Below are positions 26,760-61,013 of a DNA stretch of 64,000 nucleotides, piece by piece. How positions within the stretch are numbered: position 1 is the first letter of the stretch; each line of letters opens with the position of its first letter. Both the position numbers and the translations under genes were made by a program. Source of the stretch: Amoeboaphelidium protococcarum X5 (Eukaryota > Fungi > Aphelidiomycota); contig JALDTO010000181.1 in NCBI GenBank assembly GCA_023515725.1, forward strand, positions 252,927-316,926, written 5' to 3'. The notes under the pieces are model-generated. The model was given only the letters and a program-made list of their open reading frames with translations, had not been told where the DNA came from and searched no databases.

Positions 26760-27704
26760 TCCCACTCAGTTTAAATGTTGACGTTAAACAATAAATCGAT
26801 TTAAAAGCGGATCTTGGAGAAGTTTTCGCGGATAGAATTCTCGCTTTCTTCTAAAGTTGCGACACTAAGCCTCTGTTCTACCAATTATTTTCCCACCATC
26901 TGGGCTAAATCGAATACTTTTATCTTTACATGGATCGCTAAATTGGCGGCGATAATTAATAAAAAATTAAAAGGGTTTCAAAGAGTAAATCAAACATAGT
27001 ATCACTCGTTTAATATGAATGTGAAAGCGTGAAAGACAAGGTGATATGCGTTCCGTTCGTTCGAAAGTTTTTAAGGTATGTTGACGTGGCTCCCTTTTAT
27101 TATAATTCTAAGTATTGATGACTATACTTCTAATGTAGACTAGCGGGAGATAAAATCCAAGAACTGCCTTAATCTAGTTCTGCAAGTTGATATTATTAAG
27201 CACAGTATACAATGGACCTTGCTTGATTTTGCGAGATCGCATCCGTCAATTTAAAATAGAATATGCACAGTAGATTTATGGTTGTATATTCTTTATTCTC
27301 TGCTTGCATTGTTTTATTAAATTGTTAGAGTACAAAATATGTATTTACACGCGTCATTGGGCGAAACTTCACTGACATGTTTCGATTAAAGGCAGTCTAT
27401 ACTCATGATTACCCCAACTCATTAATCGAAATTGACGCTGTTCTTTCAACCAAGAAAGATTTGGAGAATTTTGAGGCAAACTGAGATTTTGAGACGAACG
27501 AGTCGGACTGCAGAGCAGATTGAGTTGGTAATAGAGGTGTGTTGCTTGTAAAAGAGATGACGCGTCTGAAACGTGATATTGTTTTGTTATACGCGTCTCT
27601 CTCTTTTCTCTCTCTTTACTGTAACGCAGGCTTCTTATTTCAAAACTATATATTTACTTTATCTATCCTGTAAAATTGTTAATAGTTTCTTTAATTACAG
27701 AAGA

Positions 27705-29570
27705 ATGAAGATCGAGGATGTCAATTTGTTGGTTGTTGGTGCTGGTGGAATTGGATGCGAATTGTTGAAGAATCTTGTACTTGCTGGCTTCCCTTAAATG
27801 ACTGTGGTGGATCTGGATACGATTGACTTGTCTAATTTGAACAGATAATTTCTATTTAGATATTATCATATAAAGTAGAGTAAATCTAAGGTGGCATGTG
27901 AGGCTGTGAAGGCCTTTGCTCATCCTTCTCTTCGGTCAAAATTGAATATCGAAGCTCTGCATGCGAACATTATAACTGATCCTCGATTTACCGTTGAATT
28001 TTTCTCCCAATTTGATATTATCATCAATGCTTTAGACAATCTGGAAGCGAGGAGTCATGTCAATAGAATGGCTGTTGTATGTAATAAGCCATTGATTGAA
28101 TCTGGTACAGCTGGTCTTAATGGATAGGCTACTGCGCACATTCCTGGAATCACACAGTGCTTTGACTGTGTTCCAAAGACTCCTGATACTAAATCTTTCG
28201 CTGTATGCACCATTAGAAGTACTCCAAGTCTTCCTATTCATTGTATTGTCTGGGCCAAGAGCTGGCTGTTTAATGTCCTGTTTGGAGAGTCATCCGAGTC
28301 TTAGGCTGCTGGAGGTGATGGTTTTAATAATGAAGATGATAACGCTGAGGAGTTGGTACAATTGTAACAGGAGTAACAAGAGTTGTCCCAGTTGAGATAG
28401 TTTCTTTTGTCTGAAGATGGTGTTTCTTCTTAGGAGGATGGTAAATTGATTGAACATCTTTACTCTTAGAGCGTATTTGACAAAATCTTTGATAAAGATG
28501 TCCGTAGAGTTGCCTCTGTTGACGAGATGTGGAAAAAACCTGGAAGAGTTAGACCGGTCCCATTGTCTGCTCAAGATCTTAAGACGGACAAAAATAATAT
28601 TGTTAGTAATACTAAAGCTGATAATACTAGCCGTGATGTCGATGATGAACATTCAGTGTGGTCTTTGTAAAGAAACTATGCCGTGTTCATTGAAAGTTGT
28701 TCCAAGTTGGCGCTTAGATTTAAAGACGACAATAGTGAAAGTTTAGATTTTGACAAGGATGATGAAGATGCAATGAGGTTTGTGACTGCTGCATCTAATC
28801 TGAGATCTCATATCTATCACATCAAGCCATAAAAGAGCTTGTTTGAAGCCAAGTAAATGGCTGGCAACATTATACCTGCCGTTGCATCTTCCAATGCAAT
28901 TGTAGCTGCTTTTCAGACCAGTATGGCTTTGAAGATTGCAGATAAACTTGAGAAGGGAGTGGGTTTGCAATAATGTTTGAAAAGCTTTATGTCCACTTCC
29001 GCAATTAAAAAGGTTTATTTGAGCTACGAAGGAAAGCACTGGTTATAGCCTGATCAACTTGAATCACCTGCAAAAGATTGCGCTGTTTGCAGTTCCCACA
29101 AGGTTCAGTATTAAATCCTGCAGTTGGATTGCCCAAACATCGAATTGAGTACGTTGGTCGAAGCTATGCGCAAGTCAATGGGTGGTAGTGACATTTCTAT
29201 CAGTACATCTGCTGGTTCTCTATTGTATGATGAAGATTTTGACGATAATCTGGAGAAGGCTTTGAAAGATTTCATGCCAAAGCAGAGTCAATAACTCGTG
29301 TTGAACATTCAAGATGATGATGAAATTTTTACTCCTCTCTAGCTCTTTGTCATTGATGGTGCTGGTGTTTAAGCTGATAAAATAGCGTTTAGTCCGTTGC
29401 TCAAAAGGCCTTTCGTCGTGTCCAATAAACGCCGCCGTTCAGGCAGCGACGAAGATGAAGCACCTCAAGGGGATGGTTCCAATGTTGAGAGCTCTGGTTC
29501 ACATCAATAAAAGAAGGCGAAAGTTGAAATCGTTATTGACGATAGCGATGCTATAGTATTTGACGAGTGA
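27705..29570 (+). CDS. UBA2: SUMO-activating enzyme subunit 2
   Basis: [28 protein letters not shown], catalytic [23 protein letters not shown]. Confidence 0.95.
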
Positions 29571-29949
29571 AGTTGCCGTTGTAATTCAATGTACTAGCTT
29601 ACTGTATATGATTCTCATGGATAGCGAAATGGTTTTGCATGCTCTGTCTGAAACGAACGCGCGCGCTCAAGCGAGCGAGCCGATGTTTTCAGCGACTCTC
29701 GCGATAGTTTCAGATCTTGAATCAATTATTTACGGCCTATCTTAATGACTTTATCATGTAATCCACATAATATTTACATCAGCATAAAGCTTACATTCTG
29801 AAACGCTCCATAATGAAATAGCCATGTAAATCGAACCAGATCTGGCCGAGTTGACTCCAGAGGCCTCAATTATTCAAAGGCGAGGCCTCGTTTCACAAGT
29901 CCGCGATTGAGTAAACAATGAGATTTCACAACTCCACAATTCTCACATC

Positions 29950-29950
<1 letters not shown>

Positions 29951-29980
<30 letters not shown>

Positions 29981-30008
29981 CTTCTTCTTCTTCTTCTTCT
30001 TCTTCTTC
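29951..30008. repeat. (CTT/GAA)n microsatellite, about 19 units
   Basis: Uninterrupted trinucleotide run. Confidence 0.97.
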
Positions 30009-30700
30009 AAACAACTCTTGCTAGATAATACAATCCAACATTATCATACTCTGATAGTTGGTATCTACTGGTCTATCTTTTCTCTGGTATGTTTCTCTCT
30101 CATTGCAACTCTGCTACTACTGTTGTATTCTCAAGCTTCTACTGAGTCCTCTCTGAAACTGTTCTGCATTACCTTCATGACTCTGTTTGAACTGCTCCGG
30201 TCTTGAACTGCTACAAATTCTAGCTTACTATATGGATCTACTTCTGGTTGCTTCACTTTCTTTGGCTTGACTGTATCGCTGCTGTCTCTTCCATCCACCT
30301 CTAAGTCTGCGGTAAGCTTGTTGTTTCAGTCCCGCCTCTATCTGCTTATGTCTTTGGCTTGATGTACTGCATCTACTGTATGCTGCTTAATCCTTTAACA
30401 ATGGTCCAATTGCTGTGCTTACTCGGTACGCTTATCTTTCAGTTATCACTTTTTGTAGTGTTCTTTCATTACAGGTGATATGTGTATCACAGTGCGTAAG
30501 ATGTCTGCTCTATGTTCTCCAGTTATAGGACTCTATGATCTGATAATACCTCGTTCTCCTTGCTGATTATGGTTGTGTCGCAAGTCTTAGTTCCTTTGTA
30601 ACATCTTAATGATGTCACAATGTCCCTCTTGCTCTCTGCCGTTGTATGTCGGTTCCCTGATCTGATCTCTATGATACCTTAGAGTAAAGTCGCTACTCTA
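29951..30700 (-). mobile_element. Decayed non-LTR retrotransposon-like fragment ending in (GAA)n
   Basis: Purine-rich minus strand with broken frames containing REPTYNGREQEGHCDII and VLSDHRVL (like APE-endonuclease C-terminal motifs); scattered TGA stops. Confidence 0.4.
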
Positions 30701-30726
30701 AGAAGTTTGCAACAAAGACGACGACA

Positions 30727-30854
30727 GCACGATTACTAAAGGTGCATAAAAAATATATAAAAAAGAACTAGATTAGCACGATAACTTACGGTGTCTAATT
30801 AAAGTAGCAAGACTTAAGTCTCTACTAGCACGATAATCTGCGGTGCATAAAAAA
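30727..30854. promoter_or_regulatory. Three spaced GCACGAT-N7-GGTGY boxes (GCAC-N11-GTGY palindromes)
   Basis: Copies start at 30727, 30776 and 30828; copies 1 and 3 continue as GGTGCATAAAAAAT. Confidence 0.55.
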
Positions 30855-30863
30855 TCTGGCCAA

Positions 30864-31105
30864 ATGGACCTTAATGGTACCATTTCCCACAACAAATGGG
30901 AGCGACTGGGCCCGAGCTGACTGCATGGTGAAACCTCGAATCTGTTACTCTTCACTGACCGTCTCAATGTTTTAGGCTAGTAAGTGGGACTGTCGCCGGG
31001 TAAGGGGAGCGTTCAGTTAAATTCACTGTTCGTAAAACCTTCTGGCCCAGAGATGACAGGTGGATCCCTGGTAGCAGTTCGGGTCTGGGTAGTGCCTTTG
31101 CACTA
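30864..31105 (+). ncRNA. Candidate structured non-coding RNA of unknown family
   Basis: 30906-30919 pairs with 31075-31088 over 14 bp including G-U pairs; nested stems; flanking hairpins; GC-rich intergenic island. Confidence 0.55.
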
Positions 31106-31276
31106 TTTAATACTTAATGGAATGATTTTATATATTGTACTTCATTCCAAATATTCTTCTATGCTTGTGTCTTTCTCTTTCTTTACTTGTTGTAACTTGA
31201 GTAGTCGCTTGGTTGTGAATAGCATCTTTTTCATCAATCGTTTATACCTTTTCAAACAACTACGAGATTGATTGTC

Positions 31277-32794
31277 ATGCTTCGTCAGATTGTAGCGCGT
31301 CACAGGTCGCGTGTATCACTAAGAAATGTAGATAATGCTTTAAATACAGTAAACCTCAAGTAGAATTACTCAGTTGCATCCTTCCGTAGTCTGAATTTAG
31401 ATCCTGCGATATTGGCCACTTTAGCCACAAATGATATTCTGATACCAACTGAAATTTAGTCAAAATGCATCGGTCCGCTGCTGAATAAGGAGAATGCTAT
31501 CGTATTGGCTGAATGTGGCAGTGGAAAGACACTAGCAGTCTTACTACCTCTTTTATAGAATTTACTTTAATTAAAGGGAGTTTCATTAGCTGGGGACAAG
31601 TATCAGATGCGATCTCTATTCATATCTCCGAATAATTAGTTGGCGCGTCAAGTCGCTGGTGTTGTTAATAAATTTGCTCCTGCTCTTGGGCTTAGTAGTA
31701 AGCTTTTAATTAATGAGGACTTTGAAGACTCTGGTAGTTTATATCTGCCAACTTAAACTGATTTAGTCATTTCTACATTTTAGACGCTTCACACGGTGTA
31801 ACACTTGCATAAATAGCTCTTCTCTCAACTTCAGCACCTGGTAGTGGACGAAGTAGATTTAATGTTTGGTGATGGCGAACGTTCGAAATCATATAGTCCG
31901 GTGACAACGTTCAGCAATATTCTGAAGTTCTCAAAATAATAATCATAGAATCGTGGCTAATCTAATCTGTAATGCATATTCGCGTGTGCGACTCTTCCTA
32001 AAAGATTGGTGTCTGCTGACTCAATAGTATCATCAAAGATTCGCGATGTTAAAATCATTAGTAGTTCCAATTATCACCGATTTCCTTCGTCACTTAGGCA
32101 GGAGTTTATTTAAATATCCTCGTCTTAATCTGATGGATCCGCTGATGTTCAATTCAACTCTGCTGAGGTATTTCAGCTCAAAATCAAGGAGCTCATGAAT
32201 ATCATACGCGAAAATGCCACCGGATAAAAAATGCTGGTATTCTGTAACTCTGTAAGTTAAGTGGACAAAGTTCATTAATAGCTCGGCGTAAAGTTGTAAG
32301 AATCACCAGCGTTGGCTAATATTACCGTGGATCGAATACACTCCAGGATTCAAAAAAGTTAAAAGTCTACTGTACTTTAGCGCTTTGTGGATTCTCTCGT
32401 GAAAGAGACTAGTCCAAGTTAGATTATCGTCACTGGAGACGTGCTATCTCGCGGTGTGGACTTTGATAAGTAGATTAGTAAAGTGGTGCAATTCGATTTT
32501 GCTACCAATGCCATTAATTACATGCATAGAGCAGGGAGAACTGCGCGCGCCAACAGGGAAGGAGAGCTGATTAGCTTCGTTACTGATGATGACAAGAATC
32601 TAGCTAAGTTTGTCATGGCTTATGTTGATTAGTAATAATAGAAAACATCAAGCGGTGAAAAGCCTCAACCAGCAGTAGATGAAAGTGCTGACAATTACAG
32701 AGGATTTGAAAAACTGTTCAGCCGAAAGAGATCATTAAGAGATAGTGTCAAGAGAAAAGAGAAGAAAGCTTTGATTACAGATATAACTGCATGA
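31277..32794 (+). CDS. DEAD-box RNA helicase, mitochondrial Mrh4/DDX28-like
   Basis: Arg-rich presequence; PTEIQ, AECGSGKT, DEVD, SRGVDF, YMHRAGRTAR; C-terminal LFSRKRSLR. Confidence 0.85.
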
Positions 32795-60924: not shown

Positions 60925-61013
60925 ATTTCTTCCTGATGCTGTCTTCTTAACTCCGTCATTTCTTCCTGATGCAATCTTCTTAACTCCGTCATTTCTTCCT
61001 GATGCAATCTTCT
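60925..61013 (-). repeat. 33-bp tandem repeat (~2.7 copies) encoding ELRRLHQEEMT in a small coiled-coil ORF
   Basis: Units start at 60925, 60958 and 60991, within ORF 60729-61052. Confidence 0.85.

Follow-up and report, generated by a model that had tools for sequence, protein, structure and literature searches.

An intergenic element of the aphelid Amoeboaphelidium protococcarum X5, found at positions 30864-31105 on the forward strand of a 64,000-nucleotide stretch of contig JALDTO010000181.1 (hereafter, the window), is best explained as a member of a lineage-specific family of independently transcribed, small structured RNA genes, possibly of the polymerase III type, a reading to which we give a probability of roughly 0.5. 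This account is built upon five observations, namely a strand-specific fold, the number of copies in the genome, the profile of conservation along those copies, the uniqueness of an upstream motif and the exclusion of known RNA families; from these we infer transcription, the polymerase involved, the ends of the RNA and its function.

When the forward strand of 30864-31105 is folded, its minimum free energy is -91.7 kcal/mol (z = -3.17), a value that none of 200 dinucleotide shuffles equals, while the reverse strand of the same interval yields z = -0.47; a second dinucleotide-shuffle test gave z = -3.8 for the window copy. The fold is real, exceeds chance and is specific to the forward-strand RNA, and the asymmetry between strands arises because the consensus fold has 75 pairs of which approximately 11 are G-U, workable on the forward strand only. 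An earlier note on this DNA had described an unassigned, strongly structured forward-strand RNA candidate and had proposed a comparison with shuffles, which the window copy does beat (z of -3.2 to -3.8); its description stands both in the strand specificity of the fold and in the lack of any Rfam match. Equally sound is the long pairing that it claimed: CTGGGCCCGAGCTG (30906-30919) pairs along its full length with CAGTTCGGGTCTGG (31075-31088), four G-U pairs included. Read as DNA, these 14-nt arms match at only 10 of 14 positions, and each of the four mismatches is a G-U pair on the forward strand, which, together with the z-scores of -3.2 on the forward and -0.5 on the reverse strand, bears out the contention that the arms belong to a forward-strand RNA rather than to a DNA palindrome.

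At its 5' end the element carries a predicted hairpin at 30864-30883 that extends over 30859-30888 in seven of the eight copies described below. In these seven a single longer hairpin (GGCCAAAUGGACC..GGUACCAUGGCC) is intact, whereas a GG to TT change breaks that of the window copy; the second of the "two hairpins" originally placed in front of the rod is peculiar to the window copy. Folds and alignment delimit the 5' hairpin and the variable linker CACAACAAAUGGGAGCGA to 30864-30905, with the 10-mer ACCTTAATGG at 30868-30877, and this segment would be either the 5' portion of the RNA or else a promoter spacer. The linker is the most variable part of the element, and it is here that c4 bears a 10-nt deletion. 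The 5' strand of the rod follows at 30906-30956 and consists, according to the MFE fold, the RNAalifold consensus and pair counts, of 14 bp, a bulged A and 4 bp, then an inner rod interrupted by internal loops, and finally the junction UACUCUUCAC; the closing rod of the consensus thus measures 18 bp with one bulged A, and the inward extension by CTGC/GTAG reported in the earlier note is seen. In the consensus fold the junction leads to hairpin A (30957-30994), a 9-bp stem with an 18-nt loop holding GUANGU, which reads GUAAGU, GUGAGU, GUACGU or GUAUGU depending upon the copy, and to the long and irregular hairpin B (30995-31046), made up of GCCGGG-UA-AGG-GGA-GCG-UU-CAGU..ACUG-UU-CGU-AAAA-CCU-UCUGGC. 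Consensus fold, alignment and pair counts together identify hairpin B as the most invariant part of the element, its apical loop alone varying, and helices 4 and 5 are 98-100% paired with scarcely any variation.

The 3' strand of the inner and closing rod (31047-31088, ..CAGAGAUGACAGGUGGAUCC..GUAGCAGUUCGGGUCUGG), present in both the MFE and the consensus folds, is followed by the 3' hairpin UAGUGC-CUUU-GCACUA (31090-31105) and then by UUU. This perfect hairpin, listed by the earlier note as TAGTGC-CTTT-GCACTA, is unchanged in all eight copies. Beyond it, alignment and segment identities define a conserved downstream block (31106-31184) composed of an AT-rich hairpin at 31119-31148, the first T4 at 31126-31129 and a pyrimidine-rich end at which homology between the loci ceases; identity within the block is 0.8-0.97, excepting c7, in which a further insertion of approximately 215 bp lies at +264. 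The block may serve as a terminator or 3'-processing region, or may be the 3' tail of the RNA itself.

Several finer details of the structure first proposed for the window copy were not confirmed. The inner stem ACTGACCGTCTC/GGGAGCGTTCAGT is absent from the MFE and consensus folds, which use GUCUCA/UGGGAC and the long irregular hairpin 30995-31046 in its place, and the suggested pseudoknot GTTTTA/TAAAAC is restricted to c1 and c4, six of the eight copies having GTTATA instead. Likewise, the 12-bp stem ATCTGTTACTCT/AGAGATGACAGGT is weakened in five copies by a T to C change opposite A, and is broken in c6 and c7. As a separate observation, the four loop-A hexamers (window 30975-30984, the most variable loop position) are all plausible 5' splice-site hexamers, which may be a coincidence or a U1-binding mimic.

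The genome (23.6 Mb) carries eight copies of the element (c1 to c8), 93-100% identical along the full 242 nt, a count that the earlier note had recommended obtaining. Flanking sequences pair the copies as c1/c5, c2/c6, c3/c7 and c4/c8, that is, as four loci, each present in two duplicated (homeologous) regions; genome-wide duplications have been described in the history of A. protococcarum (PMC10608142). When the copies were used to build a covariance model (R1; 204 positions, 64 pairs), a search of the genome with it at E<=10 recovered exactly these eight, and no more divergent paralogue was found at that threshold. Shuffle tests of six of the other copies returned z-scores of -2.5 to -3.8, c6 being an outlier at -0.9.

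Across all 28 pairs of copies the RNA stretch is the best-kept part of the DNA that the copies share, with identities of 0.93-0.99 as compared with 0.87-0.98 for the region from -140 to 0, 0.8-0.97 for the 60 nt downstream and 0.4-0.9 for the distal portion of the shared unit, and identity falls abruptly beyond +300. These identities are mosaic (for example, c1/c4 reach 0.99 where c1/c5 reach only 0.73), and gene conversion has therefore acted between loci. Multicopy RNA genes typically show such a pattern; at the same time, homogenisation rather than selection could explain part of the conservation of the RNA stretch. The comparison of copies for covariation, which the earlier note had put forward as a means of checking the fold, gave no support to it: compensatory changes are found at none of the pairs among the eight copies. 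In the alignment 97.3% of cells are paired; approximately 17 cells break their pair versus approximately 8 in which a change on one side leaves pairing intact, roughly as expected under neutrality, and variable columns are only slightly less frequent in stems than in loops. Three copies appear damaged, namely c4, from which 10 nt are missing where the rod begins on its 5' side, as well as c6 and c7, in which common C to G and GGT to AGC changes, three in all, break the rod.

In its genomic setting the element occupies, as first described, an intergenic island, here of approximately 1.7 kb, between a ThiF-family E1 gene (frame 27570-29567, 666 codons under code 6) and a helicase gene (frame at approximately 31277-32791 under code 6); such code 6 frames (TAA/TAG = Gln) are consistent with the genome of A. 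protococcarum. Pairwise BLAST of 10-kb loci and segment identities further place all eight copies within a shared non-coding unit that extends on the forward strand from approximately -1470 to +320 relative to 30864 (29394..31184), with a sharp right edge and a left edge that is ragged between -914 and -1470. In c1 and c5 alike, the E1 frame runs approximately 58 codons (29394-29567) into this repeated 1.8 kb unit, up to the first TGA, and thus the repeat seems to supply the coding sequence for the C-terminus of E1. At 29951-30008 the unit contains a perfect (CTT)19 microsatellite, in place of which other copies have a shorter one or none, and homology between copies persists on both of its sides.

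The unit shows no sign of coding capacity, in that no code 6 ORF is consistent between its copies, the majority consensus opens no long frame, variable sites follow no 3-base pattern and indel lengths are not multiples of 3. On these grounds a coding region or decayed gene within the unit was rejected, as was a Fanzor/TnpB omega-RNA, which would be expected at or just past the 3' end of a TnpB-like ORF within a transposon, whereas code 6 translation shows an ORF neither in individual copies nor in their majority consensus. The suggestion of a retroelement-associated RNA is no more than a possibility: the element does sit in the 3' part of a dispersed unit of approximately 1.8 kb, but no ORF, LTR, TIR, poly-A or other tail repeat, or target-site duplication was found at that unit. 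A SINE or LINE-tail retroposon was set aside given eight copies at four loci only, the common context of approximately 1.8 kb, edges with neither tail nor duplication, and no tRNA-like head; a tRNA-derived element was likewise dismissed, no tRNA being present in the window or, for each copy, in the 5 kb of DNA to its left and right. Rfam families are also absent from these 5-kb flanks, and no partial copies or partner element occur elsewhere in the genome. Other DNA has entered the unit in two copies, with an insertion of approximately 1.2 kb in c4 (approximately 0.5-1.7 kb upstream of the RNA) and one of approximately 2.5 kb in c7 (approximately 1.1-3.6 kb upstream), the latter carrying a 492-codon frame under code 6. 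By eye, this frame contains a hAT-like TDSWTS motif.

Upstream of the RNA stretch, repeat search and alignment reveal three dyad repeats on the forward strand (30726..30855), of the form AGCACGAT(A/T)A-N5-GGTG(C/T) and most then followed by ATAAAAAA. Located at 30726-30754, 30775-30803 and 30827-30855, with spacings of 49 and 52 nt, each contains GATAA, and a fourth such repeat is present in six other copies. A genome-wide search with the dyad motif (AGCACGATAA-N5-GGTGC), allowing 0-1 mismatch, found it confined to the eight loci. As RNA, the upstream 224 nt yield z-scores that are not significant (-0.8 on the forward and +0.7 on the reverse strand); being unstructured on both strands, this region is therefore read as DNA-level promoter or enhancer sequence, and a longer structured transcript that takes in the dyad array was rejected. 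Further symmetric sites include a 9-bp inverted repeat, CTTAGAGTA-N7-TACTCTAAG, which does not vary among the copies and belongs to the conserved block proximally upstream (30678..30702, from sequence and alignment), and a perfect palindrome of 12 nt, AGACTTAAGTCT, in the interval from dyad 2 to dyad 3 (30810..30821, from sequence and alignment). By eye, the palindrome resembles CCTTAA(C/G) approximately 70 nt 5' of U3 and U5 and approximately 89 nt 5' of the RNase P-like gene.

Comparison with the other RNA genes of this genome provides leads as to the class of promoter. In U2, U3, U4 and U5 genes, CCATCTTTCTTTTCTC, with variants, occupies -18..-3, its end being 2-3 nt short of the RNA start; U2, U4 and U5 have a TATA-like box at approximately -38 to -42, U3 and U5 carry AACCTTAAC or GCCTTAAC at approximately -64 to -72, and in the RNase P-like gene CAAGCCTTAAC is found at -89 and TATAAGAA at -36. 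Within the candidate unit the CCATCTTTCTTTTCTC box is absent, the best PWM score of 13 out of 25.6 being at background level. Both SRP RNA genes are preceded by an identical block, TTCATGTGCAACCTTAATGGCTTA (approximately -55 to -30), which contains ACCTTAATGG in a flank that has otherwise diverged, and at both a second GTGCAATATGG occurs approximately 33 nt farther upstream. The distance from the 10-mer ACCTTAATGG to the rod start at 30906 is 38-39 nt, and so is its distance to each of the two SRP RNA genes downstream of it. Its interpretation as a general promoter word was rejected, with 43 occurrences genome-wide versus 59 for a control, and since the chance of this sharing alone is estimated at p ~0.03 and enrichment is absent genome-wide, the shared 10-mer constitutes a lead rather than proof.

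If followed, the SRP-like spacing of ACCTTAATGG would predict a start near 30906, the linker being promoter spacer. Alternatively, the AT-rich box at 30846-30855, whose position corresponds to that of the TATA boxes in the U2, U5 and RNase P genes, would predict a start at approximately 30877-30889, and retention of the 5' hairpin within the RNA would put it near 30857. The 5' end would fall somewhere in 30857-30908 and the 3' end near 31108 or 31130; immediately after the 3' hairpin there is only T3, a weak polymerase III terminator, and the first T4 comes at 31126-31129.

Known RNA classes were examined by means of an Rfam search covering 4227 families. At gathering score nothing was found in the window, at E<=10 nothing was found in 30600-31300, and at E<=10 a second copy gave a chance miRNA match on the wrong strand and nothing else; the cmscan-type check that the earlier note had advised thus produced no family match for either of the two copies. 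The same silence at E<=10 agrees with its statement that SRP, RNase P/MRP, snRNA, hammerhead and HDV motifs could not be matched, and speaks against self-cleaving ribozymes (hammerhead, HDV and others). Its suggestion of a divergent housekeeping RNA is largely excluded because the genome holds recognisable SRP, U2, U3, U4, U5 and RNase P-like RNAs at other places. SRP RNA is encoded by two genes (C264:281548-281824 and C205:741201-741477; Protozoa_SRP 76.7 bits, Metazoa_SRP 63.5 bits) that possess the UGUAAC Alu motif, end before a T5 run and share no similarity with the candidate. U2 (114 bits) and two copies each of U3 (51.8 bits), U4 (76.7 bits) and U5 (40 bits) likewise lie elsewhere, and the candidate matches none of their family models; an RNase P-like RNA with GGAAAGTCC occurs at C98:1147722 (20 bits).

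An Sm-class snRNA was rejected since the candidate has CUAUUUAAUAAUG and not the Sm site AUUUUUGUG, and also has no CCATCTTTCTTTTCTC promoter box; the Sm site of U2, U4 and U5 in this genome is AUUUUUGU(G/C)G. RNase P/MRP was dismissed given the absence of the CR-I GGAAAGUCC/CR-V P4 motif in 30864-31184 in addition to the silence of Rfam, and inspection of the candidate by eye found no ACAGAGA/AGC context, boxes C/D or H/ACA. The 9-mer CAGUUCGGG common to the candidate and U5 is within chance, and RNAduplex of the candidate against U2, U4 and U5 gave whole-length duplexes only. A Y RNA was rejected, a search of the genome for TROVE (Ro60) having returned no match where control genomes responded, with Rfam also silent. 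For vault RNA, box-B-like GTTCGGGTC and box-A-like TGGCCAAATGG lie approximately 218 nt apart in the candidate (by eye), and a Vault-repeat domain search of the genome was blank, yet the control responded nowhere either; the same is true of the HEXIM search, and 7SK has no Rfam match. Relatives outside this genome were found neither in metagenome, viral or prokaryote genome contigs nor, via an overlapping ORF, in a protein collection. The notion of a telomerase-like core fails because no copy carries a template matching the telomere repeat of contig ends: 7- or 8-mers of the CCCTAA/CCCTG(CC) array are absent from the RNA of every copy. The arrays in question, irregular runs of CCCTAA and CCCTG(CC) units, are telomere-like and occur at the starts of C214, C244 (1-80) and C146 (1-60), and pure (TTAGGG)4 is present nowhere in the assembly.

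The rival account that deserves the most attention, though we regard it as unlikely, is that the element is not a host gene but a conserved cis-acting structure in the 3' portion of an old non-coding repeat, dispersed and approximately 1.8 kb long. This repeat would be either a mobile element of the non-autonomous kind or a segment that duplication has spread, and its RNA or DNA structure would once have served propagation. Confinement of every copy to the common unit, with its sharp 3' and ragged 5' edges, is what such an account would predict, as are the insertion-like start of the unit within the last approximately 58 codons of E1 in c1 and c5, the three damaged copies, and the landing of other transposons in the unit of c4 (1.2 kb) and c7 (2.5 kb). 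A mobile origin is nonetheless difficult to reconcile with a unit that opens no ORF even in its majority consensus, displays no LTR, TIR, poly-A or target-site duplication, and has left neither partial copies nor a partner element elsewhere in the genome. Moreover, only four loci exist and all are common to both duplicated regions, which means that nothing has moved since the duplication, and where a dead repeat should decay evenly the RNA stretch is kept 2-3 times better than its surroundings.

Considerably less probable is that the unit is regulatory DNA, a promoter or enhancer cassette for the neighbouring genes, whose RNA fold is a by-product of DNA inverted repeats. Symmetric sites of DNA type are indeed present, namely the dyads, the palindrome AGACTTAAGTCT and the 9-bp inverted repeat, and at three of the four loci a forward-strand ORF begins 100-400 nt past the unit; at the c4/c8 locus, however, the downstream gene is convergent, GC-rich pairing over a distance of 170 nt is atypical of promoters, and a by-product of DNA symmetry would not account for the strong difference between strands or for arms that match at 10 of 14 positions as DNA with all four mismatches being G-U on the forward strand. 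Least probable of all, and to our mind very improbable, is a known RNA so divergent that it escapes Rfam models, such as RNase MRP, a 7SK-like RNA, a minor-spliceosome snRNA or a large U6-related RNA. Vacancies for such an RNA formally exist, given that genome-wide Rfam searches found neither RNase MRP nor U1, and that U6 was not found by RF00026 or by the words ACAGAGAAGATTAGCA(TGGCCCCTGC), the two near-matches appearing to be coding. In addition, the rod contains a GAUC/GAUC duplex, and the terminal hairpin with its U-run is faintly 7SK-like. One strand of U4 stem II is altered (UUACACAG), and U6 may therefore be divergent or interrupted. Set against this are the silence of Rfam at E<=10 for two copies, the lack of CR-I, ACAGAGA/AGC, Sm, C/D and H/ACA features in the candidate, and the presence of four loci per duplicated set versus one for SRP, U3, U4 and U5.

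Under the preferred reading, that of a lineage-specific RNA gene family, the eight-copy family would produce a forward-strand RNA of approximately 200-250 nt. In the core of this molecule a long closing rod would join the 5' and 3' parts and support a three-way apical domain bearing hairpins A and B, after which would come the terminal hairpin and U-run. Transcription of its own would be driven by the conserved region of approximately 240 bp upstream, in which three to four GATAA-containing dyads are accompanied by an AT-rich box, and the transcript may serve as a scaffold that binds proteins, most likely by way of the invariant hairpin B. Within this reading a polymerase III-type gene is the likeliest form, because a polymerase II snRNA box and Sm site are lacking, ACCTTAATGG is spaced as in SRP genes, and the 5' and 3' regions pair, as they do in many polymerase III RNAs. 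A more ambitious version, which we consider possible though somewhat doubtful, holds that the eight copies encode an abundant, aphelid-specific RNA of an undescribed class that is governed by a dedicated transcription-factor array, assembles into an RNP via hairpin B and has no conserved housekeeping counterpart.

Among characterized systems, one comparable in general form is found within the same genome. Like the SRP RNA genes, the candidate would specify an RNA of a few hundred nucleotides with a long G-U-rich rod and has no polymerase II proximal box. It differs from SRP RNA, however, in having neither sequence nor model similarity to it, no UGUAAC Alu motif and no helix 8 motifs, and it differs from the SRP genes in occupying four loci per duplicated set rather than one, in being followed by T3 rather than T5, and in possessing the dyad array, which is missing from those genes. 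The Class I RNAs of Dictyostelium are expressed RNAs of approximately 40-65 nt with an upstream element termed DUSE. The candidate family resembles them in its dispersed near-identical copies, family-specific upstream motif, paired ends and lack of relatives outside the lineage; unlike them, it is predicted from sequence, would measure approximately 200-250 nt and has a tandem dyad array upstream.

Similarly, 7SK and the ciliate-type telomerase RNA are polymerase III RNAs whose terminal hairpin and U-run are bound by LARP7-family proteins. With these the candidate shares a long-range closing stem, a multi-branch core and, at the 3' side, U residues after a hairpin, although it matches neither the 7SK nor the telomerase models of Rfam and has no CCCTAA/CCCTG template. 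There is also a likeness to MITE-like and other hairpin-forming repeats, which extends to inverted arms approximately 170 nt apart, a rod-like fold and the existence of several copies. In contrast to MITE-like elements, the arms of the candidate match at only 10 of 14 positions as DNA with mismatches that are G-U on one strand, target-site duplications are absent, and copies never occur outside the shared 1.8 kb context.

Aphelids form the lineage sister to Fungi and, to our knowledge, their non-coding RNAs are essentially uncharted. If expressed, the element would therefore represent a new RNP component in a lineage that is used to reconstruct the origin of fungi, as well as a convenient marker for the evolution of polymerase III or snRNA-type promoters. 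If it is instead a decaying repeat, it would serve as a cautionary case in which a good folding z-score and conservation by gene conversion mimic an RNA gene. In either event, the locations of the SRP, U2, U3, U4, U5 and RNase P-like RNAs, the snRNA promoter boxes and the irregular telomere repeat are aids to the annotation of this recoded genome.

Two further matters concern the placement of the copies and the content of the window. Seven of the eight copies lie within 76 kb of a contig end, and a subtelomeric placement was considered; the idea was dropped because several of these contig ends are assembly joins rather than telomeres. Specifically, C264 starts with the reverse complement of the sequence that ends C164, and C158 starts with that of the sequence that ends C155, so that these are joins and not chromosome ends. 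Far downstream of the element, the window also contains a 33-nt tandem repeat at 60925-61013, comprising 2.7 copies with 96% matches.
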